From: Malacoraja senta
Lineage: Eukaryota
NCBI GenBank assembly: GCA_038087875.1
Contig: JAXLNO010003320.1
Coordinates: 62,001 to 126,000 of the forward strand
Length of the DNA stretch: 64,000 bases
Direction: 5' to 3'
Made by a program: the position numbers and the translations under genes
Notes under the pieces: model-generated
Database searches by the model: none
The model's input: the letters and a program-made list of their open reading frames with translations, nothing else
What the model was told of the DNA's origin: nothing
Part shown: one piece after another, positions 18,525 to 56,892 of the stretch
Layout of the letters: every line of letters begins with the position of its first letter
How positions within the stretch are numbered: the stretch's first letter is position 1

Positions 18525-18670
18525 TGAGATAGAGAGAGGGANNNNNNNNNNNNNNNNNNNNNNNNNNNNNNNNNNNNNNNNNNNNNNNNNNNNNNNNNNN
18601 NNNNNNNNNNNNNNNNNNNNNNNNNNNNNNNNNNNNNNNNNNNNNNNNNNNNNNNNNNNNNNNNNNNNNN
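18249..18670. other. Assembly gaps (207 N and 129 N) flanking a (GA)n microsatellite at 18461-18541
   Basis: N runs at 18249-18455 and 18542-18670. Confidence 1.
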
Positions 18671-19047: not shown

Positions 19048-19283
19048 AGCATTATATAACGGTTTCCTCCGCCATAAATGCACCCAATATGTACTAGTAA
19101 TGTCCTGTTTGCCAGCTTGTTGACCCTCTGTGTTCCCCTCCTGCAGGGTTTAGGAGCCGTTGCTGTGGACGGAGAGACGGGGACGTGAGCGGCCATTGAG
19201 GGCGGCCAGGGTGCAGATGAGCCCCTCCCCCCCACCCCCCATCTGCTCGGTGTGCGGGCTGAGCTTCGAGGGGCTGCGCTTTG

Positions 19284-20427: not shown

Positions 20428-20719
20428 CAAGAGAGCACGGGGGCTGCAGGAGCACCAGCGGATACACACCGGAGAGACACCCTATGTGTGCGCTGAGTGT
20501 GGCAAGGGTTTCACCAGCATGTCCAGCCTGTGGAAGCACCGGCGTACCCACAGCGGTGAGCGTCCCTTCCCCTGCCCGTCCTGTGGAAAGGGCTTCACCC
20601 GACTTGACCACCTGCTGGAGCACCGGCGAGTCCACACCGGTCAGCACCCCTTCACCTACCCGCTCTGTGGCAATGCCTTTGCCCGCTCCTCCAGCCTGCT
20701 TGCACACCGTTACTTTTAA
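20415..20719 (+). pseudogene. Out-of-frame zinc fingers downstream of the stop codon
   Basis: The frame of ORF 19757-20719 reads CSHCNKRARGLQEHQRIH-TGETPYVCAECGKGF...HRRTH-SGERPFPCPSC...HRRVH-TGQHPFTYPLC... Confidence 0.8.
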
Positions 20720-27030: not shown

Positions 27031-28047
27031 AAACATAGAAACATAGAAAATAGGTACAGGAGGAGGCCATTCGGCCCTTCGAGCCAGCACCGCCATTCAT
27101 TGTGATCATGTCCCCTATCAATAACCCATGCCTGCCTTCTCCCCATATCCCTTGACTCCACTAGCCCCTAGAGCTCTATCTAACTCTCTCTTAAATCCAT
27201 CTAGTGACTTGGCCTCCACTGCCCTCTGTGGCAGGGAATTACATAAATTCACAACTCTCTGGGTGAAAACTTTTTTCTCACCTCAGTCTTAAATGACCTC
27301 CCCTTTATTCTAAGACTGTGGCCCCTGTTTCTGGACTCGCCCAACATTGGGAATATTTTTCCTGCATCTTGCTTGTCCAGTCTTTTTATAATTTTATATG
27401 TTTCTATAAGATTCCCCCTCATCCTTCTAAACTCTAGTGAATACAAGCCTAGTCTTTTCAATCTTTCCTCATATGACAATCCCACCATCCCAAGGATCAA
27501 TCTCTTGAACCTACGCTGTACTGCCTCAATCACAAGGATGTCCTTCCTCAAATTAGGAGACCAAAACAAAAACAGTACACAATACTCCAGATGTGGTCTC
27601 ACCAGACCCCTATACAACTGCAGAAGAACCTCTCTACTCCTATACTGAAATCCTCTTGTTATGAAGGCCAACATTCCATTAGTTTTCTTCACTGCCTGCT
27701 GTACCTGCACGCCAACTTTCAGTGACCGGTGTACAAGGATGCCCAGGTCTCGCTGCACCTCCCCCTTACCTAACCCAACCCCATTGAGATAATAATCTGC
27801 CCCCTTGTTTTTGCTGCCAAAGTGGATAACCTCACATTTATCTATATTATACTGCATCTGCCACGCATCTGCCCACTCACTCAACCTGTCCAGGTCACCC
27901 TGCAACCTCCTAACATCCTCTTCACAGTTCACACTGCCACCCAGCTATGTGTCATCCGCAAACCTGCTAGTGTTGCTCCTAATTCCCTCTTCCAAATCAT
28001 TAATATATATGGTAAACAATTGCGGCCCCAACACCGAGCCTTGCGGC

Positions 28048-31000
28048 CAGTGGCGGACTGGCCAGGGTATCAGCTTGCCCGATGGCAAGTGGGCCCCTGA
28101 TGAAGTGCCCCCCCCCCCCCCCTATATCAAATAAAAATGCAATAAACAAACAAACACAGATAACTGTTTTAGTAATAAAAAGGAATAAGATGTATCTGGC
28201 AGCTAGAATTACACTGAAAGTTTAATTTAAAAAAATATCCACAGTATCAACAGGGATGAACTACTTTTGAGTTAAAATTAGTCACAAAAATTTACATTCA
28301 TTCAATCTCACAGGACTTATCTTATAATAATTACTTACAATATTCTCTGATTTTACCGCTCCAGTGTGATTTTTAATTCTTTGAAAAGGTTCTCCCAATA
28401 CTTAAATGACACCAAATAATATAATATACTCCCAAAAAATTTCGGTTGGCAAGTGAGAAAATTTTGTATCAAAGATTTGTCCGTATTTTTGTCACACACA
28501 CTTGAAAAGCCTCAGCCTGCCCCCCCCCCCCCTTATTGAAGAGATGTTTTTAATTTTTAGTTTTTGTATATGTATAAAAGATCATTGTTGCATATAACTT
28601 CTTGTTGCATCATTCACCAGGCGGCCAGACGTGGCGTGGCTCCTTTACCATTCTTTTTATATAGTTTTTCAAGGATCGTAAAAAAAAATTATCGGTAAAC
28701 AATATCCAAATTCAGCTACATGTGAGTTCAAATTTAGATATTAGAAAAACGTAATTGTTACACCAGGGTAGGCTCCAGTTATCCATAGTAATTATCTGGT
28801 TATCAGTGACTGCATTGAAAATATTATATGAAAAGTTAATGAAGCCTGTTCTTCAGCATATGTGCTTAAACATAAGTTATTGTTAAAGCTATGTGAGAGG
28901 TATTATCAATATTCAGGATTTTTTCATGTATATATTCTTGTGAATCATTGTTCTCAGTGATGAACATTAAGTATCGTAAAAGTAATAGCCTTACAGATGA
29001 AACTAGTAGTGCTTGCATATCTCTCAAGGTTAACAAATATAAACCGGATATAAAATATGTGTCATCAGCGATGCAGCAGCAGGACTCATTGATGCTAAAT
29101 GTATAAAACGTCCACAATTATTATTCGGTATGTGCTTAAAGGTATTATCTGTGAGCGACTACTTTCAGTTGTGCCAAGTAATGATGGTACAGGACAGGGA
29201 CTTTTTGATCTATTGATTGAAACATTACAGCATCTTAAAATTGACCCCCAAAAATGTTTATCTGTATTATGTTTAACTATATTACAAAGTTAGAAACTAG
29301 TATTCCAAATCTATTAAATCTAATAACACAATTTGGTCAGTTCTCAGGATATAGGATTAATTGGAATAAAAGTGAAATTATGCCAATAACAAAATTCAAC
29401 TTAAATACAATACAACAATCCCCTTTTAAAATAGTTAAAGATAAACTTAAATATTTAGGAATCTATGTAACTAAGACATATACCTCTTTATTTAAACAAA
29501 ATTTTCCATCCTTACTTAATAAATTACACAAACATATTCAGTACTGGAAAACACTTCCTATTTCAATGCTTGGTAGAATTAATGCTATAAAAATGATTTT
29601 CTTACCGCAACTACTATATTTATTTCAATTAATTCCGATATATATTCCAAAAAACGTTTTCAAAAAAGTCGACTCCATTGTTTCAAGCTTTATTTGGGAT
29701 TATAAGAATCATAGAATAAGTAAAAAACATTTATGTAAGTCAAAGAGCAACGGAGGTTTGGCCTTGCCAAATTTATTATTTTATTTTTGGGCAGTCCATA
29801 TTAAAAACATGAATTTCTGGCTGGAAGAAATGGACCAACAACCAGAATGGTTAAGGATGGAAAAGGAAGACTGTTTACCTTTTGAAATAGGTTCGATTAT
29901 ATTTGCTACCACAAAATTGCATAAAAAAACCTATAAGGAAAACCCTATAATACATAGTGGAATACGAATTTGGAAACAATTAAAAAAGGCTTTAAAACTG
30001 AATAATATACCACTATGCCTTCCCATTGTAAATAATCCTCTATTCAAGCCATCCATATTGGATAGAGGTTTTATACAATGGAAAAATCAGGGAATTAAAA
30101 GGATTGGACATCTTTATAGGGAAGGCATCTTTCTGTCATTTCAAGAGTTACAACAGAATCATGGACTACACTCAAATAACTTTTTCAGATATTTACAAAT
30201 TAGAGATTATGTTAAATCCAATACACAAGTTTATAGGACTAGGGAACCAGAAATTCTTGATTAATGTTTGAATACGCATCCTAACACTGAAAAATTAATA
30301 GCTTATATTTATAACATTCTCCTAAATAATGAGGAACCACCGATGGAACTATATATACATAAATGGGAAAATGAGTTAGGTTATCCTATTACGAAAGATA
30401 TTTGGGACGAAAGTTTACAACATATACATCAATGTTCGTTAAATGCCAGACATGCTTTAATACAATTTAAAGTCTTACACAGATTACATTATTCCAAAAT
30501 AAAACTAAATAGAATTTTCCCACATATTTCTCCTATATGTGATAAATGCCTGCACCTAGAGGCCAATTTAACACATACCTTTGCAAATTGTATAAAAATT
30601 AAAAATTACTGGACTGATATTTTTCAAATAATCTCTGAAGTTGTTAATACCAAATTGGCTCCAGACTCAAAATTAATAATACTTGGGATATCAGAACAAA
30701 GTTTAACACTCACAACAAGCCAAAGAAACTTCCTTGACTACAGTATAATAACAGGGAAAAAATTAATATAAAAATTCTGGAAAGGCCCTACAACCCCCAC
30801 AATTAAAATGTGGATTGTGGAAATGTCGGAGACCCTACATCTAGAAAGAATTAGACTTGTCTTAATGGACAAGCAAGAACTTTTTGTTAAAATATGGGCT
30901 CCATTCATTGCCTATTTGAAGGGATAGAGTGGCCCAGCGCGAAAGCCCGACTGAAGCTTGAACTCAGGATTAGATGTAATTATATTTCATAACCTACGAA

Positions 31001-33115: not shown

Positions 33116-36100
33116 CTTGCGGCACTCCACTCGCCACTTACTGCCATTCTGAAAAGGACCCGTTCACTCCTACTCTTTGCTTCCGGTCTGCCAACCAATT
33201 TTCTATCCATGTCAACACCTTACCCCCAATACCATGAGCTCTAATTTTAGTCACCAGTGTCCCGTGCGGGACCTTATCAAATGCTTTCTGAAAGTCCAGG
33301 TACACTACATCCACTGGCACCCCTTCATCCATTTTACTTGTCACATCCTCAAAAAATTCCAGAAGATTAGTCAAGCATGATTTCCCTTTCATAAATCCAT
33401 GTTGACGGACTAATCCTTTTACTGCTATCCAAATGCCCCATTATTACATCTTTAATAATTGACTCCAGCATCTTTCCCACCACCGAAGTCAGGCTAACTG
33501 GTCTGTAATTCCCTGTTTTCTCTCTCGCTCCTTTCTTGAAAAGTGGGATAACATTAGCTATCCTCCAATCCACAGGAACTGATCCTGAATCTATTGAACA
33601 TTGGAAAATGATCACCAATGCATCCACTATTTCTAGATCCACCTCCCTGAGGACCCTGGGATGCAGACCATCAGGTCCAGGGGATTTATCATCCTTCAGT
33701 CCCATTAGCCTACCCAATACTATTTCTCGCCTAATGAAAATTTCTTTCAGTTCCTCTACCCCCTTAGATCCTCTGTCCTCCAGTACAGCTGGGAGATTGT
33801 TTGTGTCTTCCTTAGTGAAGACAGATCCGAAGTACCTATTCAACTCTTCTGCCATTTCCTTGTTGCCCATAATAATTTCACCCGTGTCTGCCTTCAAGGG
33901 ACCCACATTTGACTTTGCTACTCTTTTTCCCTTAACATCTTTAAGCTTCTTTACTCAATACTCTGACTGATGAAGGACAAAGTGCCAAAATATTTTTTGA
34001 CCACCTAATATACCAGCGACTCAACCTTCAAGGAACCATGCAACCATCAACCATTCCTCTGCCCACCTGGCTAATTGATCGAGATCCTGCTGCAATCTTT
34101 CACAACCATTTTCACTATTTGCAAATCCACTCACTTCTGTATCATCAGCAAACTTGCTAATCTTGCCCTGTTCTGTGACGTTTCACAGAGTGCTGGAGTA
34201 ACTGAGTGCTGGAGTAATATTGCGAGGTCAGGCTGAGTACAGAAGTTGGGAGGTCATGTTGCAGTTGTATAAGAAGTTGATGAGGCCGCATTTAGAGTAT
34301 TGTATTCAGTTCTGGGCACCATGTAATAGGAAAGATGTCATTAAACTGGAAAGGGTACAGTGAAGATTTACGAGGATGTTGCCTCAGGACTAGAGGGCCA
34401 AGCTATAGGGAGAGGTTGAGTAGGCTGGTACTCTATTTCATGGAGCACAGGAGGATGAGGGATGATCTAATAGAGGTGTATAAAATCATGATTTGAATAG
34501 ATATGGTTGAGTCTTTTGCGCAGAGTAGGTGAATCGGGGAGCAGAGGACATAAGTTCAAGGTGAAGGGCTAAAGCTTTAATAGGAATCTGACAGGTATAT
34601 TTTTCACACAAAGGGTGGTAGGTGTATGGAACAAGCTGCCAGAGGAGGTACAGACAGGGACTATCGCAAAATTTAAGAAACACTTAAACAGGTATATGGA
34701 TAGGACATGTTCGGAGAGATATGGATCAAATGTGGACAGGACTAGTGTAGATGGGACATGCTGGGCCGAAGGGCCTGTTTCCACACTGTATCTCTCTATG
34801 ACTATCTATCTTTCCCTCTCAAACCCATTCTCCTGCCTTCTCCCCATTACCTCTGACACCTGTATCAATCAAGAATCTATCAATCTCCTCCTGAAAAGTG
34901 TCCATTGACTTGACCTCCACAGCTGTCTGTGGCAATGAATTCCACAGTTCACCACCTTCTGACTTAAGAAATTCCTGCTCATCTTCTTCCTAAAGGAATG
35001 TATTTTAATTCTGAGGCTGTGGCCACTGGTCCTAGACTCTCCCACTAGTGGAAACATCCTCTCCACATCCACTCCATCCAGGTTTTTACCAGGCTGGGAC
35101 AGACGGCAACAGCTTCACACCGTGTCCCAAAGCTTGTGTCCTGTCCTGCTTCACCCAGGCAGCAGAGACGTTATAGGAGAGGGCAAGCACCGTCACAAAG
35201 TAGCTCACGATGGTTTGGGTAACATTCAGGAATGTCTATGCATGTCACATCATGAATATAACTGAAGAAGGGTCTTGACCCGAAATATAATCTATACCTT
35301 TTCTCCAGAGATGCTGCCTGACCCAGTGATTTGCTCCAGCACTCTGTGAAATGTCACCTATCCATGTTCTCCGCAGATGCTGCCTGACTCACTGAGTTAC
35401 TCCAGCGCTCTGTGACATGTCACCTATCCATGTTCTCCAGAGATGCTGCCTGACCCACTGAGTTACTCCAGCACTCTGTGACATGTCACCTATCCATGTT
35501 CTCCACAGTTGCTGCCTGACCCGCTGAGTTACTCCAGCACTTTGTGTCTATTTTCCCTTCAGCCATGTGCCCAAGCCCACTCTCCCCTCTCCTTTCCTAT
35601 GTTCCTTTCCACCCATAAACCTATCTCTACCTTTACATTTCACTCCTCTTTCAAATCTGCTCTACTTATCTACATGCATTTTTCTTCTTAACTTTTTAGT
35701 CATAGAATGATGCAGTGTGGAAACAGGCCCTTCAGCCCAACTTGCCCACACCGACCAACATGTCCCATCTAAACTAGTCCCACTCACACGCGTCTGGCCC
35801 ATATCCATGTAAACCTCTCCTATCCATGTACGTGTCCAAATGTCTCTTAAACATTAGGATAGTCCCAGCCTTAACTACCTCCTCTGGCAGCTTGTTCCAT
35901 ATACCCACCACCCTTTGTGTGAAAAAGCTACCTCTCAGATTCCTGTTAATTTCTGAAATATTGGTCATGAATTTGATGCAAAAATGCTCCAAAATAAGGC
36001 TCAGAATGCATCAGAGAGCATCTAAAACCCCTGGACCCTGGCATCGAGGGACTTCACACTTCACGCTCGTGATGTGCACAGCGCGCACATTATTTCACAT

Positions 36101-41081: not shown

Positions 41082-41133
41082 ATGCTTCTTTTTACCTTAC
41101 TGAACACTTACGGTGTGGCCACTGTCTCCTCTG
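41082..41133 (+). CDS. MHC class I-like exon 1, leader peptide MLLFTLLNTYGVATVSS
   Basis: ATG at 41082, 17 codons plus G, then GTAAGC donor at 41134. G+AT gives Asp1 of alpha1. It lies about 140 bp below an X2/Y-box module. Confidence 0.75.
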
Positions 41134-41434
41134 GTAAGCAATACTGCTTCAACCTGTGAACTTTGAGGAAACAACAAAACTGATTATATTTACTGTTGCA
41201 CAGTGCCTGTGTTTGCCCTGGGTTCATTGTCTTGGATGTATTAATTGAATGATTGAATTGAATGTATTAATAATTTTGGGTAACGGTCTTTCCTTAGTTG
41301 TAAAGGCTCCTGTGGGAAGTTATATATACTATGGTTACCTTGGCAATCCATTGAACAGAAGAACTGAATACATGTAAATAATGAACATAGAACATAGTAC
41401 AATACAGCACAGGAGCAGGTCCTTCAGTCCTTCA

Positions 41435-41466
41435 GTCTGAAGAAGGGTCTCGACCCGAAACGTCAC
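41435..41466 (+). ncRNA. Minimal type I hammerhead ribozyme motif, sense strand of MHC intron 1
   Basis: CTGAAGA 41437-41443, AGGGTCTCGACCC, GAAACGTC ending at 41464; stem I is only 2 bp (GT/AC). Confidence 0.7.
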
Positions 41467-44400
41467 CCGTTCCTTTTCTCCAGAGATGCTGCCTGACCCG
41501 CTGTTACCTCAGCATTTTGTCTACCTTCGGCCCACAATGTCTGTGCCGAACAAACTAAACTAATCTCCTCTACCTGTATGTGATCTGTATCCGGCCATTC
41601 CCTGCCTATCTATGTACCTATCTAAAAGCCTCTGAAATGTAACTGTTATATCTGCCACCATCACCACAACCACCACTGGCAGCGCGTTACAGATGTCCAC
41701 CACCCTCCACATAAAACAACTTGCTCCGCTCATCTCCTTTGAACATTGCTTCTCCAACCTTAAAGTGATGTTCTCTGGTCTTCAACATTTCCACCCTGGG
41801 AAAAAGGTTCTGGCTGTCCACTCTGTCTGTGCCTCTCACCATGTTGTGCACTTTCATCAGGTCTCCCTTCAACCTCCAGTATACAAGAGAAAACAATCCA
41901 TGTTTGTCCAATCTGTCCTTGCACTAATGCCTCAGACAGAATTCAGGTGATGTGCACTTTCAATAAAGAAGTGACTTCTGCATTAGTAGGTGTTCCACCT
42001 CTCCAAGATTTCCTCAGCTGGTGTTAGACACCCACATGATGGTAAAATTCAGCCTGCATTAAATGACCAATCAATGTTGTGTTAATGTTGTTGCCATCTT
42101 GTTGTTTGTTGCATGCTTCCTGTCCTGCAGACCCTATCCATTACCCCATCACCACTTCCCCAGAAGACGATAATGAGATTTAAGAAGCTTGAGGATAGGC
42201 ACGTGGATATGCAGGGAATTGAGGGATATGAATCATCTACAAGCATGAAGAGTTTAGTTGAACTTGACATCATGTTCGGCACAGACATTGTGGCCGAACT
42301 CCAGCCCATTACACCCTTAATGAACAAAAATCTATCAATCTCAATCTGGAAATTTTCAAGTGGGCAACATATTCAACAGATTACAGAATCGAGAACCAGA
42401 GGACATAGGTTTAAATTGAGGGGGGAAAGATTGAATGGGAATCTGATGAGCAATTTCTTCCCACACAATGGTACCTTTCTAACTATTCTGACATTCATCA
42501 AGGCTTGGAGATTACAAACCTACTCGTCCTGAAAGTTTCATCCCATTGTTATCAAATGAAAGTAAATATAATGGTGTTAAAGAAGGAACTGCAGATGCTG
42601 GAAAATCGAAGGTACACAAAAATGCTGGAGAAAGTCAGCGGGTGCAGCAGCATCTATGGAGCGAAGGAAATAGGCAACGTTTCGGGCCGAAACCATATAA
42701 TGGTGATGGCCATGTTGAAATAATAACATATAAAACAAAAATCCTCGGCTGTGGAGTGTTTTGGGAAGCCACATGGATTTTATCGTTACTGTATTCCACT
42801 CTTAGCCGTCTTATGTTTCTCCTGGTAACACTGAAACAGACACTTCTAACTCTGCCCTCGGGGCCCCTTCTCACTTCACTTAAACACATGAACTTTGACA
42901 CTGTCTGGTGTGCTGCATGTAATCTTTATCACAGAACAAATACTGCTTATGCATGTGGAAACAAGAAACTGCACATGCTGGTTAATACACATAAAATACT
43001 GGAGTAATTCAGCAGGTCAGGCAGTATGTCTGGAGAACATGGTTAGGTGATGTTTCAGTTGACACAAGTGTAGGAAGGAAGTGCAGATGTGTAAGAAGGA
43101 ACTGCAGAAGCTGATTTAAACCGAAGATAGACAATAAAGCTGGAGTAACTCAGCGGCACAGGCAGCATCCCTAGAGAGAAGGTATGGGTGACGTTTCGGG
43201 TCGAGACCCTTCTTCTGACTGCTGATGCAGATGCTGGTTTACACCGAAGATAGATACAAAAGGCTGGAGTAACTCAGCAAGTCAGGCAGCATCGCTGGAG
43301 AAAAGGAATAGGTGGAGTTTCAGGTCAAGACACTGCATCAGACAGAGTCGGAGGTGCATATATTTCATTGTACTTTGTCATATCTCTCGGTTCTCTGTCC
43401 CCTGACTCTCATTCTGAAGAAGGGTCTCGACACGAAACGTCACCTTTTCCTTTTCTCCGGAGATGCTGCCTGACCCACTGAGTTACTCCAGTATTTTGTG
43501 TCGAGTTTCAATTTAGGCCCTGTTTATCTCAGTCTCCACCACCCCCCCCCCCCATCTCTATGAGCTGTGTTGCAGCTGCCTATGAGGACCTGGACTCAAT
43601 CCTGATCTCTTACAACCTGGCTTTTTTTTCCCCCTGCAAACGTGTGTTTGCTATGGTTATTCCAGTTTCCCCGCACGTCCCCAAAATGCCGGGCTGAAAG
43701 GTAAATTGGCCAGTGTGAATTGGTCATGCATATGTATTAGAATTGGTGGAGGGGATGAGGGAGGTGTTAATGGGAGATTGGCAAATATTAAAAGGGTTAG
43801 CGTACCACAGGTATAAATAGGTGTTTGATGGTCACCACGAACTTGGTGGGCTAAAGGGCCTTTTATGTGCTGTACCCAGTGAACATAAGTTTAAGATGAG
43901 GGGGGAATGATTTAATAGGAACCTGAGGCATAGCATTGTTACACAAAGGGTGGTGGGTGTACTGAATGAACTGCCGGAGAAGGTAGTTCAGGCGCGTACT
44001 ATCACGACATTTAAGAATCATTTAATCAGGTACATGGATAGGATAGGCTTATAAGGATATGGGCCTCAGTCAGCTGTAGAGCCCACATCAATGGATATTT
44101 CTCAGGTGGAGATTAACAGATTCTTGATCAGTATGGGTTTCAAGGGTTATGGGGTGCAGGCAGGAGAATGTGGTTGATAGGGAGAGATAGCTCAGCCATG
44201 ATTGAATGGCCGATGGGCTGAATGGCCTAATTATTCTCCTAGAACTTATGTACTGATGAAATACAGGTAGTGTAGATGAGGCATGTTGGTTGGTGTGGCA
44301 AGTTGAGCCATAGGCCCTGATTCCCTGCTGTATGACTCTTTGACTTTACCTCTCTATGATTCTATAAAGTCTCCTTGACATTGTCCAGTTTCTTAATATA

Positions 44401-44567
44401 ATAAAATATTCTTCAAATTTTGGAATATTGTAACTAGTAGAACCTATCGACATGATAGACAATAATAGATCTTTGAAGATGGGAAACAATCCAGTAGGAT
44501 CATTCAATACCTCGACCATAATTGGTGGAGTAGGTATCAGAGCCCATCATGCCAACTCTTGAAGAAG

Positions 44568-44875
44568 GCTCAGTGGTGCAGCGGTAGACTTACTCGATTA
44601 CAGCACCATAGACCCAGGTTGGATCCTGATTACGGATGCTGTCTGTACGGAGTTTGTCCATTCTCCCCATTACCGTGTGGGTTTTTCCCGAGATGTTCGG
44701 ATTCTTCCCACATTCCAAAGACGTATAGGTTTGTAGGTTAATTGGCTTGGTCTAGAATGTAAATTGTCCCTAGTGTGTGTAGGATAGTGTTATTGTGTGG
44801 GGGTTGCTGGTCAGTGTGGACTCGCACGAAGGGCCTGTTTCCATGCTGTATCTCTAAGCTAAAAACTAAACTAAA
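44568..44875 (+). mobile_element. HE1-type SINE in MHC intron 1
   Basis: Same family motifs. Confidence 0.8.
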
Positions 44876-45065
44876 GGCTCCTGACCCAAATTGTCACCTG
44901 ATCATTGATGCTGCCTGCCCCACTGAGTTCATCCAGCACTTGCATCTGCAGGTCCTTGTGACTCCCTTATTCAAAGTTATTGTATTGTTATCAGTTTTAG
45001 CATTAATAACTTAGTTATTTTCAGTGAATGATACAATCATACTTATTTTTGTTTATGCATTGCAG

Positions 45066-45326
45066 ATTTACACCATCTTGCATTTTACTACCTGTTGAAC
45101 CATGGATTGAATGAGCTGCCTGAGTACAGTATGGTAGCAATGCTGGATGACGTCCAGATAGCATATTTTGACAGCACACTAGAGCGGGCTGTTCCCAGAC
45201 AGCGATGGATGGCCCAGTCTTTCCCGCATGATCACTGGGATTCAATGGCCATCACAGTTGCAGGTTTTCATGGGATTGTCAGAGGAAATGCTGAGATAGT
45301 CTACCAACAGCAACATGGTATCTCGA
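45066..45326 (+). CDS. MHC class I-like exon 2, alpha1 domain
   Basis: Acceptor ttgcag at 45060-45065, donor GTAAGT at 45327, 261 bp. Translation DLHHLAFYYLLNHGLNELPEYSMVAMLDDVQIAYFDSTLERAVPRQRWMAQSFPHDHWDSMAITVAGFHGIVRGNAEIVYQQQHGIS keeps class I motifs (H3, PE, DD-Q, FDS, P-W-M, WD). Confidence 0.92.
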
Positions 45327-45589
45327 GTAAGTGTCGTGAGCGGACCTGGGGTAGACACTCAGTGATGACACAGATGGATTTTGTTTTAGTTTTATTGTTG
45401 ACACATGATTCTCTGATACACTTTTTTTGCGTTAGTCAATCACATCAAAGAAAACTATTCATAAATACAATCAAACCAAACTCGTACAATAGGTAGAGCA
45501 AAGAGTGCAGAATGTAGTTCTCAGCATTGTAATGTACCAGTGCCAGAGACAAAGTCCAGTGTCTACAATGGGGTTGAGGTGAACCCTAG

Positions 45590-46010
45590 CATAAGGGAGG
45601 ACTGTTCAGAAACCTGATAACATAGGGGAGGAAACAGTTACTGAGTCTGGTGGTGCACGCTTTAATGCTTACGTACCTTCTGCAGGAAGAAGGAGTGACC
45701 AGAACGGGACAAATCTTTGATTATGTTGTCTGCTTTCCTGAACCAGTTGAAATACAGATGGATTCACTGGTGGGGAATCATGTTTGTGTGATCGACTGTG
45801 CTACATCTCCACCTCTCTGCAAATTTCCAGCGGTCTTGGGCAGAACTCTTTCCAAACTAAGTTGTGATGCAACCTGTCAGTATGCTTTCTATGGCACATT
45901 TGTAGAAGTTTGTAAGAGTCATTGGAGATGCCGCATTTCCTTAGTCTCCTGAGGCAGTAGGGGAACCAGAAACTCTCAACCTTTTTCACTTCAGCACCAT
46001 TGATGCTGTT
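45590..46010 (-). mobile_element. Rex1/Babar-type LINE 3' fragment in MHC intron 2
   Basis: Degenerate LRRLRKCGI segment followed by typical downstream Rex1-like sequence. Confidence 0.6.
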
Positions 46011-47071
46011 TCAGACATTTACTCCATAACATTTTGATAGAGACACGGCCCATCGTCTATATTTAATGTGTCCTAACTGCTGAACACACAGTCATAACAG
46101 TTGGCTGGTGATAGTCTCTTTATGGGTTAAGCATTTGATATTCAACACCAGTAATAAGTGGATGGATTGGATCATCTGTTTTGTTGGGCTGGAATGAGGG
46201 AGAAACCATTAGTTTATTTATAGCCTGATCATCTAGAGATGGGATCTTGATTTAAGCTGGTTGATGGTGACTATGAGGTATTCCCTCAGTAATAATATTG
46301 TGTTAATCCAGCATCCCCTCAATATTGGCAACAATCCTCAGAGGGTGTAGCAATCCCACACAGTGCAACAGCCTTGATGTACTTCCCATCTGCATTGCCT
46401 TAACCTTCAGACTGACCTGTTGGCTCTGTAGCATTGCCCATCTGACAATGCACTTCTTCCTCTGTTCTTTATGTACGACAGTGCAGAATCTGAGTTCCAC
46501 CCTTCTGACACAGCAGAACTCCTTTAGTGTTACATCCGCAACAGTAAAGCTCCCCCCCATAACACTTGAGGTTAGTCCATGCCCTCAGTATATAGACCAT
46601 GGGTTATTGAGTCACACATCATGGAAACCGGCCCTTCTGCTCACTGATTCCACATTGATCATCCATTGTGCTAAGATGGAGTCACAGCAAACTGCAGATG
46701 CTGCCAATCTGAATTTAAAACAAACAGGAGGAACTCAACGAGTCAGGCAGCATGCTGTGGAAAAATGGACAGAAAACATATGAGACCAGGACCATTTAGA
46801 GTGATGGGGTAGAGTGGAGAAAGCTGGAAAAGAAAAGTAGTCTGTGTAGGATAGTGTTAATATGCGGGGACCACTGGTCGGTGCGGACTCGGTGGGCCGA
46901 AGGGCCTGTTTCCGCGCTGTATCTCTGAGCTAAACCTGCTCCTGTGCTGTACAGCTCCATGTTGTGTTCTGTTATGCCTGTTTGTACCATGCTGAGAACT
47001 GATTTGTAAATTGCCTCTCCCTTCCATCCACTCTCCCCAACACAAATCCTCCACCCCTACCTCAGCCCCAG

Positions 47072-47347
47072 CTGTTTGCTTTGTGCAGGGTTTCTGCGGC
47101 TGTGAAGTGGACAGTGACAATTCCACTGATGGGTTTGTCAGACTGGGTTATGATGGGGAGGATGCCTGTGCTTTTGACAAGGACAGAATGCGCTGGATTG
47201 CACTACGTCCAGATTTCCAGATGCTAGCAGATCGGTGGAACGTCAACACCTTCATGAACAAGTATTTTAAAGATCTCCTGGAGAAGGACTGTGTGAAGTG
47301 GCTGCGGATATATATGGAGTGTGGACAAGAAGCACTACAGAGGAGAG
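47072..47347 (+). CDS. MHC class I-like exon 3, alpha2 domain
   Basis: Acceptor ccccag, donor GTACAC at 47348, 276 bp. Translation TVCFVQGFCGCEV...GYDGEDACAFDKDRMRW...ADRWN...DCVKWLRIYMECGQEALQRR. Confidence 0.95.
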
Positions 47348-47449
47348 GTACACGACGTAGGCACTCTGACTGATGGGCCAGAGGATATCCTCTGGATAGA
47401 TCAGGTGGGAAATATCATGCACTTCAGGCTGTCACTTGAGTAATTATTT

Positions 47450-47740
47450 AGTTTAGTTTAGAGATACAGCGCGGAAACCCACCGAGACCGCACCGAGCAG
47501 CCATGCCCGCACACTAACACTATCCTACACACACTAGGGACAATTTGCATTTATACCAATCCAATTAACCTACAAATTTGTACGTCTTTCGAGTGTGAGG
47601 GGAAACCGAAGATCTCGGATAAAACCCACGCAGGTCACAGGGAGAACGTACAAACTCTGTAAAGACAAGCACCCGTAGTTAGTAACAAACCCAGGTCTCT
47701 GGCGCTGTAAGGCAGTAGCTCCACCGCTTCGCCACCCTGT
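47450..47740 (-). mobile_element. HE1-type SINE in MHC intron 3
   Basis: Same family motifs. Confidence 0.85.
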
Positions 47741-48551
47741 TCTACAACGTGGGTATCAGTAAATTGTCTGGCAACGTGCCTCTTAGATGGAACCAGTGGG
47801 TAGGAAGTGCAAGTGAAAGATAAATATTGTACCAGTGTCCTTTATCCACAGTCATATAGATATTCAGGAAATGGAGGAATATGTATCTTGGTCTTATGTT
47901 TAGCACCGACCTTGTGGCCTGAAGGGTCTGTTGCTGAACTGATCAGAAACCCAATCAGATTCTCTATTTGCCTCTATTACTCCTTGGGATGGTGACATTC
48001 AATTTCCAACAGTTCTCTATTTGAAGAACTTCTTCCTCCCATTCCCTCTTGGAATATTTAGTGTTATTATTCAGCAGAGATTCATGAACAGGTAGAAGCA
48101 ATCATGTCTACAGTATCAATCCCAATGGTGAGTTATACTCCTCCATTGGGCCTGCATTCCCCTTTCATCTGTGCTGTCAGTTAAGGTCTGGAGCTAAGAT
48201 AAGGAGCATGTCAGTGATATTAAAGCTAAATGTTTTGTTGTTTTGCCAGAAATGCAAAATGAAAAGAGAAAAGGCTGTAAACTTTGTGCAAGATAGAACT
48301 GCAGATGATGGTTTACACTGAAGATAGAAGATGTTGGTGTAACTCAGTGGGTCAGATAGCATCTCTGGGCATTCCTTCTCTCCAGAATGCTGCCTGACCT
48401 GCTGAGTTATTCCAGCATTTTGGGTCTAGGCTGAAAACTTAGTTCAGCCAGAGAAAAAACTCTGATTGGGAAAGTGGTGAGTTGCAGTGATCTTACAATT
48501 GAAGGCTTTTGTTCATGTCTTCACTGATTCTGACTCTTCTTACACTTGCAG

Positions 48552-48824
48552 AAACCCCTGAGGTGTTTATTGGGATTAAACGTGATGGGTCGCAATCACT
48601 GAGACTCTCCTGCCTTGTCACAGGCTTCTAGCCACGGGCCATCGATGTAACGTGGCTGAGAGATGGTGAGGGGGTCCATGAGTCTGAATCCAGTGATCTG
48701 TTGCCCAATTGGGATGGGACTTACCAGCTGAAGAATACAATTCAACTGAATAGAGAAGATGTGGCAAAATTCTCCTGTTACATCGAACATGCAACTCTGC
48801 TGCAGGGAGTCAATGTTCCACAGG
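48552..48824 (+). CDS. MHC class I-like exon 4, alpha3 Ig-C1 domain with premature stop
   Basis: Acceptor ttgcag, donor GTAAGT at 48825, 273 bp. Translation ETPEVFIGIKRDGSQSLRLSCLVTGF*PRAIDVTWLRDGEGVHESESSDLLPNWDGTYQLKNTIQLNREDVAKFSCYIEHATLLQGVNVPQ. The stop keeps it off the ORF track. Confidence 0.93.
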
Positions 48825-48919
48825 GTAAGTGGCAAGTCAATGAGGCTGATCACTTGAGACCATAAACCTCCTGGACTGAGATAACAGTCTCAACTCACAC
48901 TCTTAACTAAGCTGTGGAT

Positions 48920-49560
48920 TTAGACTTTAGGCTTTAGAGATATGCTGCAGATACAGGCCCCTCAGCTCACTGAGTCCTCGCTGAATAGTGATCAACCCAT
49001 ACATTTACACTAACCTACACAATACGGACAATTTACAATTTTACCTAAGCCAAGTAACCTACAAACCTGTATGTCTTTGTAGTGTGGGAGGAAACCCACG
49101 CAGTCACAGGGAGAACATACAATGTCCTTGCAGACAGCACCTGTAGTCAGGATCAAACCCAGGTCTCTGGTGCAGTAAGGCAGCAGCTCTACCGCTACGC
49201 CACTGTGCCACCCATTATTAATTTGTGGTTATCTAATTGCTCATAATTATTGATAGTCAATGGAATGTGGTTTTAGTTTAAGAGATACAGCGCAGAAACC
49301 GGCCCTTCAGCCCACCGAGTCTGCGTCAACCAGCGATCCCTGCACACTTACATTATCTTACTTATTAGGGGACAATTTACAATTATACCAAGCCAATTAA
49401 CCTACAAACCTGTATGTCTTTGGACTGAGTGAGGAAACCGGAGATCCAGGCAAAACCCACGCAAGTCCCGGGGAGAAGGTACAAAACTCTGTACAGACGG
49501 GACCCGTAGTCAGAATTGAACCGGGTCTCTGGCGCTGTAAGGCAGCAGTTCCACCGAGTG
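48920..49560 (-). mobile_element. Two tandem HE1-type SINEs in MHC intron 4
   Basis: Copies at about 48920-49212 and 49275-49560. Confidence 0.8.
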
Positions 49561-50018
49561 GGCAAAGCAGAGCCAAATGGAATACAGTGTAGCAAGTGTC
49601 TGGTTTTACATTTTGGCAGTCGGAATAAAGACATAGACTATTTTCTAAATGGGGAGAGAATTGAGAAACCTGAGCTACAAAGTGGGAGTACTAGTGCAGG
49701 ATTCCCAAATAGTTCATTTGCAGATTGAGTCAGTGGTAAGTAAGGCAAATGCAATGCCAGCATTCATTTCGGGGGGCGTAGAATATAAAAACAATGATAT
49801 AATGCTGAGGATTTATCGGGCACTGGTGAAGACACATTTGGAATATTGTGAGCAGTTTTGGGCTCCATATTAGAAAGGATGTGCTGGCTTTGGAGAGGGT
49901 CGAGAGGATGTATGTCCTGGGGATGATTGATTTAACGTATGAGGAGTGTTTGAAGTCTCTGTGCCTGTGCTCATGGGATTTAGAAGGTTGAGGTGGGAAT
50001 CTCATTGAAACCTACCAG

Positions 50019-53000
50019 CAGGGCCGGATTTAGATGAAGAGAGGCCCTAAGCTGTTCCACTTGTGAGGCCCCCCCCCAATCCCCCACCCCCACGACCAGA
50101 GGAAGATGGTCCACCAGATTGACACCGATTTGCAGCCGAGCGTGGCCAATGAGATAAGGGGCTGGAAAGCTGGGCTTTATTTATTTATTTATTGCCACTG
50201 CTAGTGTCGAGTTATTGGCTTAAAACACTATTATTCTGAAATGGAGGGCAAGGAAAATTACTGAAGTGTTGTTTAGAGACTACAGTGCGTTGTGACAGCA
50301 TATGTAAGAAAGGCCTATGACAGTGTCAAAAATATTATACACCTTGCAGGGCTCTCACTTAATTTTTTTTCTCTGTTGTCAGCCGGGCAACCTTGGTAGC
50401 TTTATAAGTTGCCAAATGACAGTTTAGGTGGTTATTTAAGATGGCTTGCATGACACGTGCGATAATGTGCTCACACGACCAGTCAGAATTATGCTCAATG
50501 AAGCATTCACATATTATTTCTGCTTCAAATAAAGCCACAAACTAAACATATTCACCAATCAGGACATGATATATACCACAATGACATGCAGCACAATTAT
50601 AATACTGTATCTTAACTCTTTTTACACGTTGCAATGAATGCAATTTCTATTATTTCTTTCCACTTCCAAAAAAAAATGTGGTTGGATTATTCAGCGTATG
50701 ATCAACCTCGGTGAGACCAAGTGCAGGCTTGGCGATTGCTTCGCACAACACCTCCACTCAGTTCGCAATAACCAACCTGATCTCCCGGTGGCTCAGCACT
50801 TCAACTCCCCCTCCCATTCCGAATCTGACCTTTCTGTCCTGGGCCTCCTCCATGGCCAGAGTGAGGCCCACCGCATATTGGAGGGGCAGCACCTCATATT
50901 TGCTTGGGTAGTTTACACCCCAGCGCTATGCACATAGGCTTCTCTAATTTCAGGTAGTCCTTGCTTTCTCCCTCCTTCCCCTCCCATTCCCAGCTCTCCC
51001 ACAGCCTACTGTCTCCGTCTCTTCCTTTATTTTTCATGTCATTCCCCCCCCCCCCCGACATCAATCTGAAGAAGGGTCTCGACCCGAAACATCGTCTATT
51101 CCTTCGCTCCACAGGTGCTGCCTCACCCGCTGATTTTCTACAGCTTTTTTGTCTACCAATGGGATCCCACAACAGGCCACATCTTCTCATCTCCTCCCCT
51201 GTTGGCTTTCCATAGAGACCGCTCCCTCCGTAACTCCCTGGTCAATTCGTCCCTTCCCACCCAAACCACCCCCTCTCCTGGCACTTTCCATTGCAACTGC
51301 AGGAAATGCTACACTTGGCGTTTTAATTAAGTTCAAGACAATGGGGCTGTACATTGGCCATAAGGTTGCTGCCTAAAAGTGCCAGAGACCTGGAATTTAT
51401 CCTGAATATGGGTGTTGTCTGTTTGGAGTTTGCTCCTTTTCACTTTGATCGCATGGGTTTTCTTCGGGTGCTCTTGTTTCCTTCCACATTCCAAAGGTGT
51501 GCAGGAACCTATTTCAGAACCAACCCTAAACGTAATATTTCCCTTTTGTCCAGAGATTCTGTCTGACCTGTTGAGTTACTCCAGCTTTGTGTGTCTATCT
51601 TCAGTTTAAACCAGCATCTGCAGTTCCTTCCTACACACACGATACTATACGATAGAACTTTATTAATCCCAGGAGGGAAATTGTGTGTGTGTGCGTGTGG
51701 GTATATATACTATGCACACACACACACACATATATATATACAATACAATTACAATACAATTTTATTTGTCTTTTGGACAAATTTGTCATTTGGACCCCGT
51801 TGAGGTCCAAACGAAATGTCGTTTCTGCAGCCATACATTACAAAACGAAGAAGACCCGATACACAACACAATTTACACATACATCCATCACAGCGCTGTG
51901 ATGGAAGGCAAAAAAACGTATCTCTCCACTGCACTCCCCCCCCCCCCACCCCCCCGATGTCAGAGTCAAAGTCAAAGCCCCCGGCGGGCGATGGTGATTA
52001 TCCCGCGGCCATTAAAGCCACGCCGGTTAATGCAGGGTCGCGCACCGCGTCTTGGTGTTAGAGCCCCGGCGCGCGCTCGCAAAGTCCGGCGGCCATTCCA
52101 AGCCGCGCGGGGCGGTGATGTAAAGCCCCCCTCCAGGTGCTCTTCAACCCCGCAACTCGGGCGGGAGAAGTCGCCGCTGCGGATGCCCCGAAAAGTGGTG
52201 TCCCACCAGGGGACCCACGGGCTTCCGGTGTTGCCGTCCGCCAGACCCGCGGTTGTAGCCTCCGAATCTCCGGGGGTCGGGTAGCAGCAGCGATTGTCTC
52301 CACCACAGCTATAAATATACACCGTTTTGTTTTCTCGTTTATAACATTGTTTACAGAGTACTATGTTTACATATTCTGTGGTGCTGCTGCAAGTAAGGAT
52401 TTCATTGTTCTAACTGGGACGTGAGAGAATAAACTCTTGACTCTTGACTTACTTCGCTAATGTGTGGGAAAGAACTAGTGTACGGGTGATCAATAGTCGG
52501 CGTGGACTCGGAGGGCTGAAGGGCCTGTTTCCACGCTGTATCTTCAAATTAAGCTAAAGACACTAAAACCAGAGGGAGTCTAATGAAGTGTTTCTACCCG
52601 AAACGTCACCCAATTTCTTCTATCCTGAGTTGCTGGCTGCTCCATGGAGTTCCCCCGCACAATTAAAGCATGGAATAGTCTTCACCCTACCATAGTTACC
52701 CAACCAGACGCAACTAAATTTAAGGTACCTCTTTTTTCCCCAAGAACCCTTTTTTGCTTAAGTCCAAGTCAAGAGTCAAGAGAGTTTTATTGTCATGTGT
52801 CCCAGATAGGACAATGAAATTCTTGCTTGCTGCAGCACAACATAATATGTGAACATAATACAGAACAGGAGATAAAAGTTCAGTGTGTCTATATACTATA
52901 GACCATATATATACACAATAAATAAACAGATAAAATGCAATAGGCTGTTATTGTTCAGCCCTCTACCACCTCCAGTTTAAATTCCTTTTAGAATATTTAT

Positions 53001-53534
53001 GGAGGATCAGGAAACCAGAAGCGAGAGTTACTCCAGGGAGATACTCCTGATCCAGGGTCAGGGAGTGATTCTGTGTTAGTTTTCAGCGGTTGCGGCGAGG
53101 CAGCAATGGCGGCCAAATCTCCCACAATTCAAAGCGAGGGAGAAAGTGCCCAGCGCCGACCAGTTGCCGTGGCAGTGCGCATGCGCAGGGCGGCCGATGA
53201 CGTGCGGGCTGTGGTTGTGCGCATGTGCAGGGGAGGACGTGCGGGCTGTGGTTGTGCGCATGTGCAAGGCGGCCGGCCGTGCTGGCGGATGAGGAGCGAG
53301 CGGAGAACGGAGACCCGGACACGGAGAGTGACAGACGGAGATAGAGATAGAGAGGGGGGCCGCCCCGCCCAGAGTTGAACGGCTGGTGTCCTGCCTTGGC
53401 CGGAGGCCCCCTATATTTCAGGGCCCCAGGCTTCAGCCTATGAAGCCTAGTGGTAAATCCGGCTCTGCGAGCCCCTCCTAGATCTCCAGGCCCTAAACTG
53501 AAGCTTGTCCATCTTATATGTAAATCCGGCCCTG
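50019..53534. mobile_element. Non-autonomous hAT-type element in MHC intron 4, carrying nested repeats
   Basis: 14-bp TIRs CAGGGCCGGATTTA (50019-50032, 53521-53534) and an 8-bp TSD CCTACCAG (50011-50018, 53535-53542). It interrupts a CR1 fragment. Confidence 0.9.
50705..51330 (+). mobile_element. Penelope-like element fragments (GIY-YIG C-terminus, pLTR with hammerhead motif, linker fragment)
   Basis: GETKCRLGDCFAQHL...LPVAQHFNSPSHS...LSVLGL...EGQHLIF, then CTGAAGAAGGGTCTCGACCCGAAACATC at 51066-51093, then AFHRDRSLRNSLV...CNCRKC. Confidence 0.85.
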
Positions 53535-54898
53535 CCTACCAGATAATGAAATGCCTGGTTAGTTGATGGGAAAGGAAGTTTTCAGTAATGGGAGAGTCTA
53601 GCACAGCCTCACAATAAAAATACCTACCTTCAATATGGAGATGAGGAGGAATCTCTTTAGTCACAGGGTGGTGAATCTGTGGAATTCATTGATACAAACA
53701 GCTGTGTGGGTCAAGTCATTGCATATTTTTCAAGCAGAGATTGATAGGTTCTTGATGAGTACGGGTGACAAAGGTTACAGGGAGAAGGCTAGAGAATGGG
53801 ATTTAGCGGTAAAAAATAGATCTGCTATGACTGAATGGTGGAGTAGACTCAATGGACTTGAAAGGCATAATTCCGCTCCAATATCTTATGGTCAAAATTA
53901 TTCTTATGTCACCCTTAACTCACCCATCCAAATGTAGGAACAGTGGAAGCAAGATAGGCTGATCCTGGACAAGGTCTCTTATCTTCTTCCTTGGGCATCT
54001 AGCTAATTTTCTGATAGTAGCTAGTTACACAAAAGACCAATAGTGGTGCCATATTATCAGGCTGAAGTAGCAGCACCTGTTCTGTAGCTGACTTATTTGT
54101 TCCAGACAAGACCTCTGCAAAGATCTTCACACCAGGGCCAAGCTGACATGGTTAAGATTGCTGGTCAGTACAAATAGACAGTAGTGTTAATGTCTGTGTG
54201 TGCCTATGTGTGTATGTGTGTGTGGGCTCATGTGTGTGAGACAGTGAGGGGGAGAGAGAGAGAAAGAGAGAGCATGTGTATGTGAGAAAATTAAACTCAG
54301 ATATCATTGAAATATCAGCAAAGATTAAAACCTTTGAAGTTTTATCAACTATAAATGGGTTCACTTTTATTTGCTATAATAACAATCAACATAAGAAAAT
54401 GGCCTTGTTGACCTCTACACTGTAAATAGTCATATATTTCTGACGTACTTGATTCTTTAAATTCTTAATTAAATGCTGCAGATAAAATCTCAATACCTCA
54501 ATGCTAATATGAACTTAATGATTTTTCATTGATCATTTTAAGCACATCCATCCTCTGTATAAATACTTAAATCTAAAACGTTATTACTTTTTAATTAGAT
54601 ATGAACAGTGCTACTTTAATTTAGATAATAAAATCATTACAATGTTGTTATTGATCACTAAATGTTTAAAATGCACTATACAGTGGCTTGCAAAAGTTTT
54701 CATACCCCTTGAACTTTTCCACATTTTGTCACGTTACAACCACAAACGTAAATGTATTTTATTGGGATTTTATGTGATAGACCAACACAAAGTGGCGCAT
54801 AATTGTGAAGTGGAAGGAAAATGATACATGGTTTTCAAATTTTGTTACAAATAAAAAACTGAAAAGTGTCGCGTGCAGAAGTATTCAGCCCCCCTGAG

Positions 54899-55920
54899 TC
54901 AATACTTTGTAGAACCACCTTTCGCTGCAATTACAGCTGCAAGTCTTTTGGGGTATATCTCTACCAGCTTTGCACATCTAGAGACTGAAATTTTTGCCCA
55001 TTCTTCTTTGCAAAATAGCTCAAGCTCAGTCAGATTGGATGGAGAGCATCTGTGAACAGCAATTTTCAAGTCTTGCCAGAGATTCTCAATTGGATTTAGG
55101 TCTGGACTTTGACTGGGCCATTCTAACACATGAATACGCTTTGATCTAAACCATTCCATTGTAGCTCTGGCTGTATGTTTAGGGTCGTTGTCCTGCTGGA
55201 AGGTGAACTTACGCCCCGGTCTCAAGTCTTTTGCAGACTCTAACAGGTTTTCTTCCAAGATTGCCCTGTATTTGGCTCCATCCATCTTCCCCCATCAACT
55301 CTGACCAGCTTCCCTGTCCCTGCTGAAGAAAAGCATCCCCACAGCATAATGCTGCCACCACCATGTTTCACAGTGGGGATGGTGTGTTCAGGGTGATGTG
55401 CAGTGTTAGGTTTCCGCCACACATAGCGTTTTGCATTTAGGCGAAAAACTTCAATTTTGGTCTCATCTGACCAGAGCACCTTCCTCCACATGTTTGCTGT
55501 GTCCCCCACATGGCTTGTGGCGAACTGCAAACGGGACTTCTTATGGGCTTTTTTCAACAATGGCTTTCTTCTTGCCACTCTTCCATAAAGGCCCGATTTG
55601 TGGAGTGCACGACTAATAGTTTTCCTGTGGACAGATTCTCCCACCTGAGCTGTGGATCTCTGCAGCTCCTGCAGAGTTACCATGGGCCTCTTGGCTGCTT
55701 CTCTGATCAATGCTCTCCTTGCCCGGCCTGTCAGTTTAGGTGGACGGCCATGTCTTGGTAGGTTTGCAGTTGTGCCATACTCTTTCCATTTTCGGATGAT
55801 GGATTGAACAGTGCTCCGTGAGATGTTCAAAGCTTGGGATATTTATTTATAACCTAACCCTGTTTTAAACTTCTCCACAACTTTATCCCTGACCTGTCTG
55901 GTGTGTTCCTTTGGCTTCAT
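54899..55920 (-). pseudogene. Tc1 transposase, disrupted
   Basis: MKPKEHTRQVRDKVV... from ATG at 55920, with motifs WSDETK, QDNDPKH and [11 protein letters not shown]. Nonsense TAA at 55843-55845 and a frameshift in a C run near 55289. Confidence 0.92.
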
Positions 55921-56000
55921 GATGTTGTTTGTTCACTAATGTTCTCTAACAAACCTCTGAGGCCTTCACAGAACAGCTGTATTTATACTGAGATTAGATT

Positions 56001-56353
56001 AATAATAATAATAATAATAATGGATGGGATTTATATAGCGCCTTTCTAATACTCGGCGCTTTACATCGCATTATTCATTCACTCCTCAGTCACACTCGGT
56101 GGTGGTGAGCTACTTCTGTAGCCACAGCTGCCCTGGGGCAGACTGACGGAAGCGTGGCTGCTAATCTGCGCCTACGGCCCCTCCGACCACCACCAATCAC
56201 TCACACACATTCACACACATTCACACGCAGGCAAAGGTGGGTGAAGTGTCTTGCCCAAGGACACAACGACAGTATGCACTCCAAGCGGGATTCGAACCGG
56301 CTACCTTCCGGTTGCCAGCCGAACACTTAGCCCATTGCGCCATCTGTCGTCCC
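56001..56353 (-). mobile_element. tRNA-derived SINE with CORE-like middle and L2-like tail, nested in the Tc1
   Basis: On the minus strand: A box TGGCGCAATGG, B box GGTTCGAATCC, GTGTCCTTGGGCAAGACACTT, tail GAAAGGCGCTATATAAAT and (ATT)n. Flanked by a short (G)AGATTA duplication. Confidence 0.85.
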
Positions 56354-56671
56354 GAGATTACACACAAGTGGACTCTATTTACTAATAAGGTGACTTCTGA
56401 AGGCAATTGGTTGCACTGGATTTTATTTAGGGGTATCAGAGTAAAGGGGGCTGAATATTTTCGCACGCGACACTTTTCAGTTTTTTATTTGTAAAAAAAT
56501 TTGAAAACCATGTATAATTTTCCTTCCACTTCACAATTATGTGCCACTTTATGTTGGTCTATCACATAAAATCCCAATAAAATACATTTACGCTTGTGGT
56601 TGTAACGTGACAAAATGTGGAAAAGTTCAAGGGGTATGAATACTTTTGCAAGCCACTGTATATGCCAACAG

Positions 56672-56892
56672 AGAGGGCAGTGAAAGAAGATATGAAGATT
56701 AGGATCGTGACTGGAGCTGTAATTGTTCCTCTCATTCTCCTGGGGATCATCCTTGGAATTGGTTGCTGGAAGAAGAGGAAAAAGAGAAAACCTTTCAATG
56801 AACAGGTACCAGCTGACAACAGCAGAGACCAGGAGAGGACCATGAAGCACAATCAGCTTCCTTTGGGATGCAGAGGAGGTCTACCGGAATGA
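56672..56892 (+). CDS. MHC class I-like exon 5, connecting peptide, TM and cytoplasmic segment (3' boundary uncertain)
   Basis: Phase-1 acceptor caacag at 56666-56671. Translation ERAVKEDMKIRIVTGAVIVPLILLGIILGIGCWKKRKKRK gives a hydrophobic helix and basic stop-transfer cluster. The exon ends either at a possible donor at 56806 or at TGA 56890-56892. Confidence 0.8.

Follow-up and report, generated by a model that had tools for sequence, protein, structure and literature searches.

Which kind of molecule is encoded by a class I gene of the major histocompatibility complex (MHC) that has lost most of the residues anchoring the termini of a peptide, and is this gene still in use in the animal in which it was noticed? 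The question is raised by a locus of the skate Malacoraja senta on contig JAXLNO010003320.1 (assembly GCA_038087875.1, positions 62,001 to 126,000 of the forward strand); this whole stretch of 64,000 nucleotides (nt), numbered from its first letter, is referred to as the window. The locus is a real five-exon non-classical MHC class I gene, and it represents, in this skate, an old lineage of elasmobranchs, single-copy and linked to the MHC, for which we use the label L1, i.e. the lineage of the window gene and its elasmobranch orthologs. Taken as a whole, we consider it likely that the window holds an L1 ortholog, sister to the UGA lineage, of a kind that would hold a hydrophobic ligand, and that this gene would have been inactivated recently in this skate.

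The gene and its orthologs in sharks and rays

The gene has the build of an MHC class I heavy chain (Table 1), with an alpha1-alpha2 platform of the Pfam family MHC_I, an alpha3 domain of the C1-set, one domain per exon, and phase 1 for all four introns; the pair Cys101-Cys164 and the cysteines of the alpha3 disulfide are present. Every exon border is GT-AG and the coding sequence amounts to 1083 nt. The spliced window protein contains a stop, and the exons were searched one by one. Leucoraja erinacea shares the splice sites: its locus (JAMYXN010000384.1), read with the ones used here, yields a complete and intact open reading frame (ORF) including the leader exon (L001:100-151), and the leader of exon 1 is conserved in the shark orthologs P0171 and P0173 as well. 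The five phase-1 exons of a class I heavy chain, which an earlier note had proposed from the letters of the window, are thus confirmed by the exon borders, the Pfam matches and the Leucoraja ORF. The acceptor of exon 3 must be the AG at 47070-71 (ccccag/CT, the slash marking the border), which is conserved in Leucoraja, because a stronger-looking AG at 47087-88 breaks the frame and is ruled out. Inside exon 5 the sequence CAG/GTACCA at 56805/6 is a possible alternative donor. Short interspersed repeats (families D1-D5) crowd the introns, and no second class I gene was found within the 64-kb window.

Table 1. Exons of the class I gene and the two lesions, in window coordinates
Feature	Positions	Strand	Remarks
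Exon 1: start codon and signal peptide (MLLFTLLNTYGVATVSS)	41082..41133	+	phase-1 donor GTAAGC
Exon 2: alpha1 domain, 261 nt	45066..45326	+	Pfam MHC_I, E 2.4e-5
Exon 3: alpha2 domain, 276 nt	47072..47347	+	Pfam MHC_I, E 5e-16
Exon 4: alpha3 C1-set domain, 273 nt, stop-interrupted	48552..48824	+	Pfam C1-set, E 7e-9
Exon 5: connecting peptide, transmembrane segment, basic anchor, cytoplasmic tail	56672..56892	+	tail colinear with orthologs
In-frame TAG at the Tyr of the GFYP motif, codon 223, alpha3	48629..48631	+	
Tc1/mariner-type transposon, intron 4	54677..56662	-	224-nt inverted ends, 95% complementary; transposase frame-broken

In a library-wide phmmer search the closest match of the alpha1 exon is XP_055486430 of Leucoraja erinacea (P0001), with 94% identity in alpha1, and over alpha1-alpha2 the window and P0001 are 92% identical. 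Orthologs of P0001 occur once per species, both in the batoids Pristis (72% identity), Hypanus (67%) and Mobula (66%) and, at 54-60%, in the sharks Pristiophorus, Heptranchias, Scyliorhinus, Stegostoma, Hemiscyllium, Mustelus, Cetorhinus and Chiloscyllium; below these, the identity of the next matches falls to about 35%, and the ortholog search found no member in Callorhinchus. With orthologs in eight shark species, the idea of the earlier note that the lineage might be batoid-specific is not borne out. The signature FHQ-x-ALR(W/L)LY, which comprises anchor positions discussed below, is conserved across the orthologs, and a DN(S/T)T sequon, the stretch FFVQG-x-CGCE and the motif MNKYFK-LLEKDCVKWL are conserved throughout L1. 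A Cys at floor position 99 in the numbering of the human leukocyte antigens (HLA; window 47096-47098), two residues before Cys101, is invariant in 13/13 L1 sequences and has no conserved partner. The window gene belongs to L1 by monophyly, signature, sequon, Cys99 and synteny; it pairs with Leucoraja at a support of 100/99, and the window and the locus in Leucoraja are colinear, 87-92% identical across introns and flanks. A Phe-to-Cys change at HLA position 93 is private to the window; the L1 consensus at this position is Phe, not His.

The linkage to the MHC can be read from Pristis, where the L1 ortholog LOC127585976, flagged as MHC class Ib (MHC-Ib) in the supplementary table of Verissimo 2023, is located between B2M/BRD2 and COL11A2/RXRB, adjoins three "F10-like" genes and has two UFA-like genes nearby. 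In Pristis pectinata (NC_067438.1, 13.17-14.22 Mb) a single cluster (PMC10751288, supplement) holds L1 together with UFA-like genes and three UGA-like ones; it is interspersed with a dozen GPR139-like genes, with TRIM39-like genes and with copies of the U1 small nuclear RNA.

Members of L1 have been annotated automatically in a dozen genomes, and the label 'MR1-like' that these genes carry is misleading. The Leucoraja entry XP_055486430 (locus L001:100-19263) is a partial model with 12 intron-derived residues (GTRPRHSDWWNG) between alpha2 and alpha3. Leucoraja also has a second, partial copy (L002:10226-14271, JAMYXN010000412.1), which consists of the alpha2 and alpha3 exons with the surrounding intron, is 86-89% identical to the window and has neither an alpha1 nor a transmembrane exon; its model, P0182, reads through the intron. 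Either this copy is a duplicate that was truncated, or it is a haplotig.

Anchor residues and placement beside UGA and UFA

The anchor columns (Y7, Y59, R84, N86, F123, T143, K146, W147, Y159 and Y171) were read from an alignment of the spliced product, with an X at the stop, and more than 150 class I ectodomains; the column map was validated on 16 fish sequences of classical type, which read YYRNF[TS][KR]WYY. At these ten columns the window reads FHQHALRWLY and UGA reads YY[RQK]NAFKWLY. Seven of the nine peptide-terminus anchors are lost in L1, position 146 being K146R, and only W147 and Y171 are kept. The hand alignment of the earlier note fares well against this map: the substitutions Y7F, Y59H, Y/R84Q, Y123A, T143L, K146R and Y159L are all correct, W147 and Y171 are indeed retained, and the N86 glycan sequon is lost, the window having H in this column. 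Likewise, the NST sequon of the alpha2 loop is present (DSDNSTDG) and conserved in the orthologs, and the hydrophobic strings FYYLL, YSMVAML, MAITVAGFHGIV and FQML can all be found in the product. With two of nine anchors kept, L1 is not a classical peptide presenter of the UAA type.

In a tree of full ectodomains L1, the UGA-like and the UFA-like sequences are each monophyletic (100), with L1 as sister to UGA (87) and UFA outside (82; Shimodaira-Hasegawa-like approximate likelihood-ratio test, SH-aLRT). A careful search of the alpha1-alpha2 tree recovers the same three clades (L1 100/100, UGA 100/99, UFA 100/100), and L1 and UGA together lie on one side of a branch with a support of 96/84. 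Both named lineages are tied to crystal structures. The best sequence match in the PDB is 9ch4_A, be it for alpha1 of the window (E 4e-22), for alpha3 of the window (E 7e-15) or for a whole shark ortholog (E 1.8e-70), and the entry 9CH4 is titled "Crystal structure of shark nonclassical MHC class I, UGA"; the nurse shark model P0275 matches 8GM8, titled UFA, at 100% identity. In the earlier note the lineage had been regarded as possibly undescribed, and in these trees L1 is nested inside neither the UFA nor the UGA clade. Judged from sequence, L1 is neither UFA nor UGA as defined by 8GM8 and 9CH4: it stands outside the UGA-like clade, as its sister, at 37-45% identity, and the UFA clade, which contains the nurse shark P0275, excludes it. 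Because sharks and rays are represented in L1 as well as in UGA, the duplication that separated them predates the shark-ray split. For the fold, alpha1-alpha2 of Leucoraja was modelled in place of the window (AlphaFold 2, AF2; alignment of 65 sequences; predicted local distance difference test, pLDDT, 93). Against class I structures the model reaches Z values of 23-24, and its top VIA match is 9CH4, with Z 24.5 and a root-mean-square deviation of 1.8 Å over 178 residues at 37% identity.

L1 and UGA have the motifs AGFHG-x-x-G and MN(K/R)YFK-LLE-DC in common, as well as Ala123, Leu159 and Gly97, and they are adjacent within the same MHC-Ib cluster in Pristis and Leucoraja. Nevertheless, UGA (the lineage of P0007, P0154 and P0259) keeps Tyr7, Tyr59, Lys146 and the N86 glycan site, all of which L1 has lost, whereas L1 has Cys99, where UGA has Phe, and the NST sequon in the alpha2 loop. 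Moreover, the tail of Amblyraja UGA contains the motif YQNI, while L1 tails, that of exon 5 in the window included, are without a YxxPhi motif, and up to three UGA copies in Pristis contrast with one L1 gene per species. UFA (the lineage of P0020 and P0275) belongs to the same wider clade (SH-aLRT 82) and the same Pristis cluster, and it has the alpha1 motifs MLDD-QI-Y-DS-L and PRQ-WMA in common with L1, together with the loss of anchors and a hydrophobic groove. It is, however, much further from L1, scoring 130-160 bits in phmmer as compared to 230-280 for UGA, lacks residues around positions 84-86, differs in its alpha2 helix, is shorter (about 310-320 residues) and is multicopy in rays.

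Two further named lineages differ from L1 by their definitions. UDA, which reportedly keeps 8 of the 9 invariant peptide-terminus residues and is present in chimaeras, is rejected, as L1 keeps 2/9 anchors and no Callorhinchus member of it was found; UEA, which is said to be a large multigene family in sharks that is not detected in rays, is rejected, as L1 is a one-copy gene that occurs in four batoids. UDA has been described as single-copy and UEA as multicopy (PMC10751288), and the single-copy MHC-Ib genes listed in a 2025 review are UDA, UFA and UGA only (PMC12562908). The searchable literature yielded no name for L1, nor any paper that details UFA or UGA or mentions 9CH4 or 8GM8, and the researchers behind the names UFA and UGA may already be aware of L1.

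A disabled copy in Malacoraja senta

The Tyr of the GFYP motif in alpha3 is present in all L1 orthologs, its codon being TAC in Leucoraja, and in three close relatives (organisms B, C and G) the contigs show a C at 48631, where the window has the G of the stop codon. Two other read sets of the same species, X1 (48480-48860) and X2 (48488-48790), show zero differences to the assembly across the TAG site, and no alternative contig without the TAG was found in X1 or X2, the bin depth being fully explained by the contigs with TAG. X1 and X2 depart from the assembly in two residues, with Gln for His at 45229 and Leu for Met at 47314, and position 45152 is heterozygous (Val/Leu). Because X1 and X2 carry the TAG yet differ elsewhere, the stop is not an assembly error and is present on several haplotypes. 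At 45152, 45229 and 47314 the alleles of X1 and X2 are the ancestral states seen in other species, i.e. there is coding polymorphism within the species. The second lesion, the Tc1 element, ends 9 nt upstream of the start of the transmembrane exon (11 nt counting the duplicated TA); its site is empty in Leucoraja, and the window shows the TA target duplication. The copy contains its introns and has TAG where four other species have TAC, a combination that marks an unprocessed pseudogene or null allele, and most likely it is an unprocessed pseudogene of young age or a null allele that has become fixed.

Several observations weigh against a dead gene. Besides the TAG and the Tc1 element no other lesions were found in the window gene, the terminal branches of the window and Leucoraja are about equal (0.05 vs 0.04), and the pairwise ratio of nonsynonymous to synonymous substitution rates (dN/dS) between the two is 0.49 (dS 0.07). 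Derived replacements are split about evenly between the window and Leucoraja, and this even split and the equal branches lend no support to a long-standing relaxed constraint on the window copy. As the lesions are few, the branches equal and dN/dS 0.49, the inactivation is very recent. In addition, X1 and X2 may come from non-independent individuals, and some function may remain, e.g. by skipping of exon 4. Thus, the gene could still work here, either because the TAG is a segregating null allele or because the alpha3 exon is skipped, giving an in-frame alpha1-alpha2-transmembrane protein; the youth of the lesion, with TAC in the relatives including Leucoraja, the intact start codon and splice sites, the lack of excess changes on the window branch and the length of exon 4, which as a phase-1 exon of 273 nt can be skipped without loss of the frame, are all in keeping with this. 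We nonetheless regard a working gene as unlikely: the assembly, X1 and X2 all have TAG despite their differences at 45229 and 47314, with no alternative contig, a chain without alpha3 would lose its main contact to beta2-microglobulin, and the Tc1 element displaces the end of the intron upstream of the transmembrane acceptor. RNA evidence, which the earlier note had suggested looking for in skates and rays, does not help the working gene either, as no RNA run holding the window gene was found among the searchable runs.

Groove and putative ligand of the intact lineage

The hydrophobicity of the groove was scored from sequence as the mean Kyte-Doolittle value over 44 positions that we take to line the HLA groove, with the offsets validated on the classical columns. 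L1 scores 0.92, UFA 0.66, UGA 0.54 and the classical-type sequences -0.07. A/V/L/I/M/F/W/C occupy 60% of these positions in L1, with charged residues and His at another 11%; the groove columns are 91% conserved (64% invariant), as compared to 81% (45% invariant) for the remaining alpha1-alpha2, and the floor has the small residues Gly97, Cys99 and Ala123. The proposal of a non-classical class I molecule without peptide-terminus anchors and with an unusually hydrophobic predicted groove is thus supported, and L1 belongs to a kind that is now known, i.e. the UFA/UGA-type hydrophobic-groove MHC-Ib genes of elasmobranchs. UFA and UGA have been reported as CD1-like lipid binders in a 2025 review (PMC12562908), and lipid binding is mentioned in PMC10751288 as well. 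Since its groove is hydrophobic and conserved and UFA and UGA are reported to bind lipids, intact L1 would most likely, and plausibly, hold a conserved hydrophobic non-peptide ligand, probably a lipid.

Accounting for these features, L1 would have arisen by duplication from an ancestor common with UGA, before the shark-ray split. Intact L1 heavy chains would pair with beta2-microglobulin and present a lipid or lipid-like ligand, and lymphocyte receptors may recognise the complex, in line with what is reported for UGA and UFA. In M. senta, the change from TAC to TAG in alpha3 would then have inactivated the gene recently, and the Tc1 transposon would additionally have landed beside the acceptor of the transmembrane exon.

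The ligand part of this account has its own counterweights. The report of lipid binding by UFA and UGA is a personal communication in the review, the ligand idea draws on sequence and analogy, and the high score, which agrees with the hydrophobic groove expected by the earlier note, comes from HLA-derived positions and not from a pocket. Moreover, the fold itself does not discriminate, with MR1, chicken YF1*7.1 and classical molecules all less than 1 Z unit behind UGA. One might think of a specialised, conserved ligand of peptide or lipopeptide nature, as in Qa-1/HLA-E or chicken YF1*7.1, as L1 keeps W147, Y171 and a basic residue at 146 and as the model platform fits YF1*7.1, which has N-acylated ligands, and classical molecules about as well (Z 23.3-23.5 vs 24.5 for UGA); however, Y7, Y59, Y159, T143, Y84 and Y123 are lost, mostly to non-polar residues, and no other lineage in the comparison has groove positions as hydrophobic, which makes such a ligand improbable in our view. 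Still less probable is a molecule without any groove ligand, acting as a surface receptor or ligand like FcRn, HFE or MIC: closed grooves are common in anchor-less class I-like molecules, but the groove columns of L1 are more invariant than the remaining alpha1-alpha2, and Gly97, Ala123 and Cys99 fit an open hydrophobic cavity as in its relatives. We give slightly less credence still, i.e. very little, to L1 being the elasmobranch counterpart of MR1 and presenting small metabolites. MR1 shows the best similarity to L1 outside the sharks, chiefly in alpha2, both in sequence (it provides the best PDB matches of the alpha2 exon, E 1e-16) and in Foldseek, where it supplies the top matches, and it too is a conserved single-copy gene. 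Yet at the ligand contacts of MR1 the alignments read Lys43 to Ala, Arg9 to Tyr, Arg94 to Gly, Gln153 to Phe, Trp156 to Leu and Tyr62 to Met, with Tyr at Tyr152, i.e. neither the Schiff-base Lys43 nor the ribityl and aromatic contact residues are conserved as a set, and on these ligand residues orthology is rejected. In addition, the trees group L1 with UGA and UFA, and a review lists no MR1 for cartilaginous fish (PMC12562908).

The conserved hydrophobic non-peptide ligand that we prefer for intact L1 recalls CD1, with which L1 has lost anchors, a hydrophobic groove lining, absence of polymorphism and a single copy in common. This analogy is functional only; there is no specific sequence affinity (the sole CD1 match has E 5e-12, with a tree branch length of 2.2) and L1 is without a tyrosine endosomal sorting motif. 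Lipid-type presentation was long believed to begin with CD1 of tetrapods, and UFA and UGA push it back to sharks. If L1 is indeed a third sister lineage with its own anchor pattern and tail, several non-peptide systems would have existed in parallel in early jawed vertebrates, and a species freshly without L1 would be a natural test of what the L1 system does. In a bolder version, which we consider rather doubtful and put forward tentatively, L1 might join UFA and UGA as the unnamed third lineage of an ancient family that presents ligands other than peptides; it would have remained a single gene since before sharks and rays separated and would have the most hydrophobic and most invariant groove of the three, the floor Cys of which could tether a ligand in the manner of Lys43 in MR1, and the skate would be its natural recent knockout.

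Elsewhere in the window, overlapping long ORFs at 19281-20719 (+) encode tandem C2H2 zinc fingers with HTGERPY linkers and are probably a ZNF gene without KRAB, or a pseudogene of this kind. They sit in a GC-rich block (55-59% GC at 20-24 kb), just downstream of assembly gaps at 18249-18455 and 18542-18670. Fragments of reverse-transcriptase ORFs of the long interspersed nuclear element type are found at 9650-10300 (-), 27249-27932 (-), 29254-30771 (+) and 33367-33906 (-).

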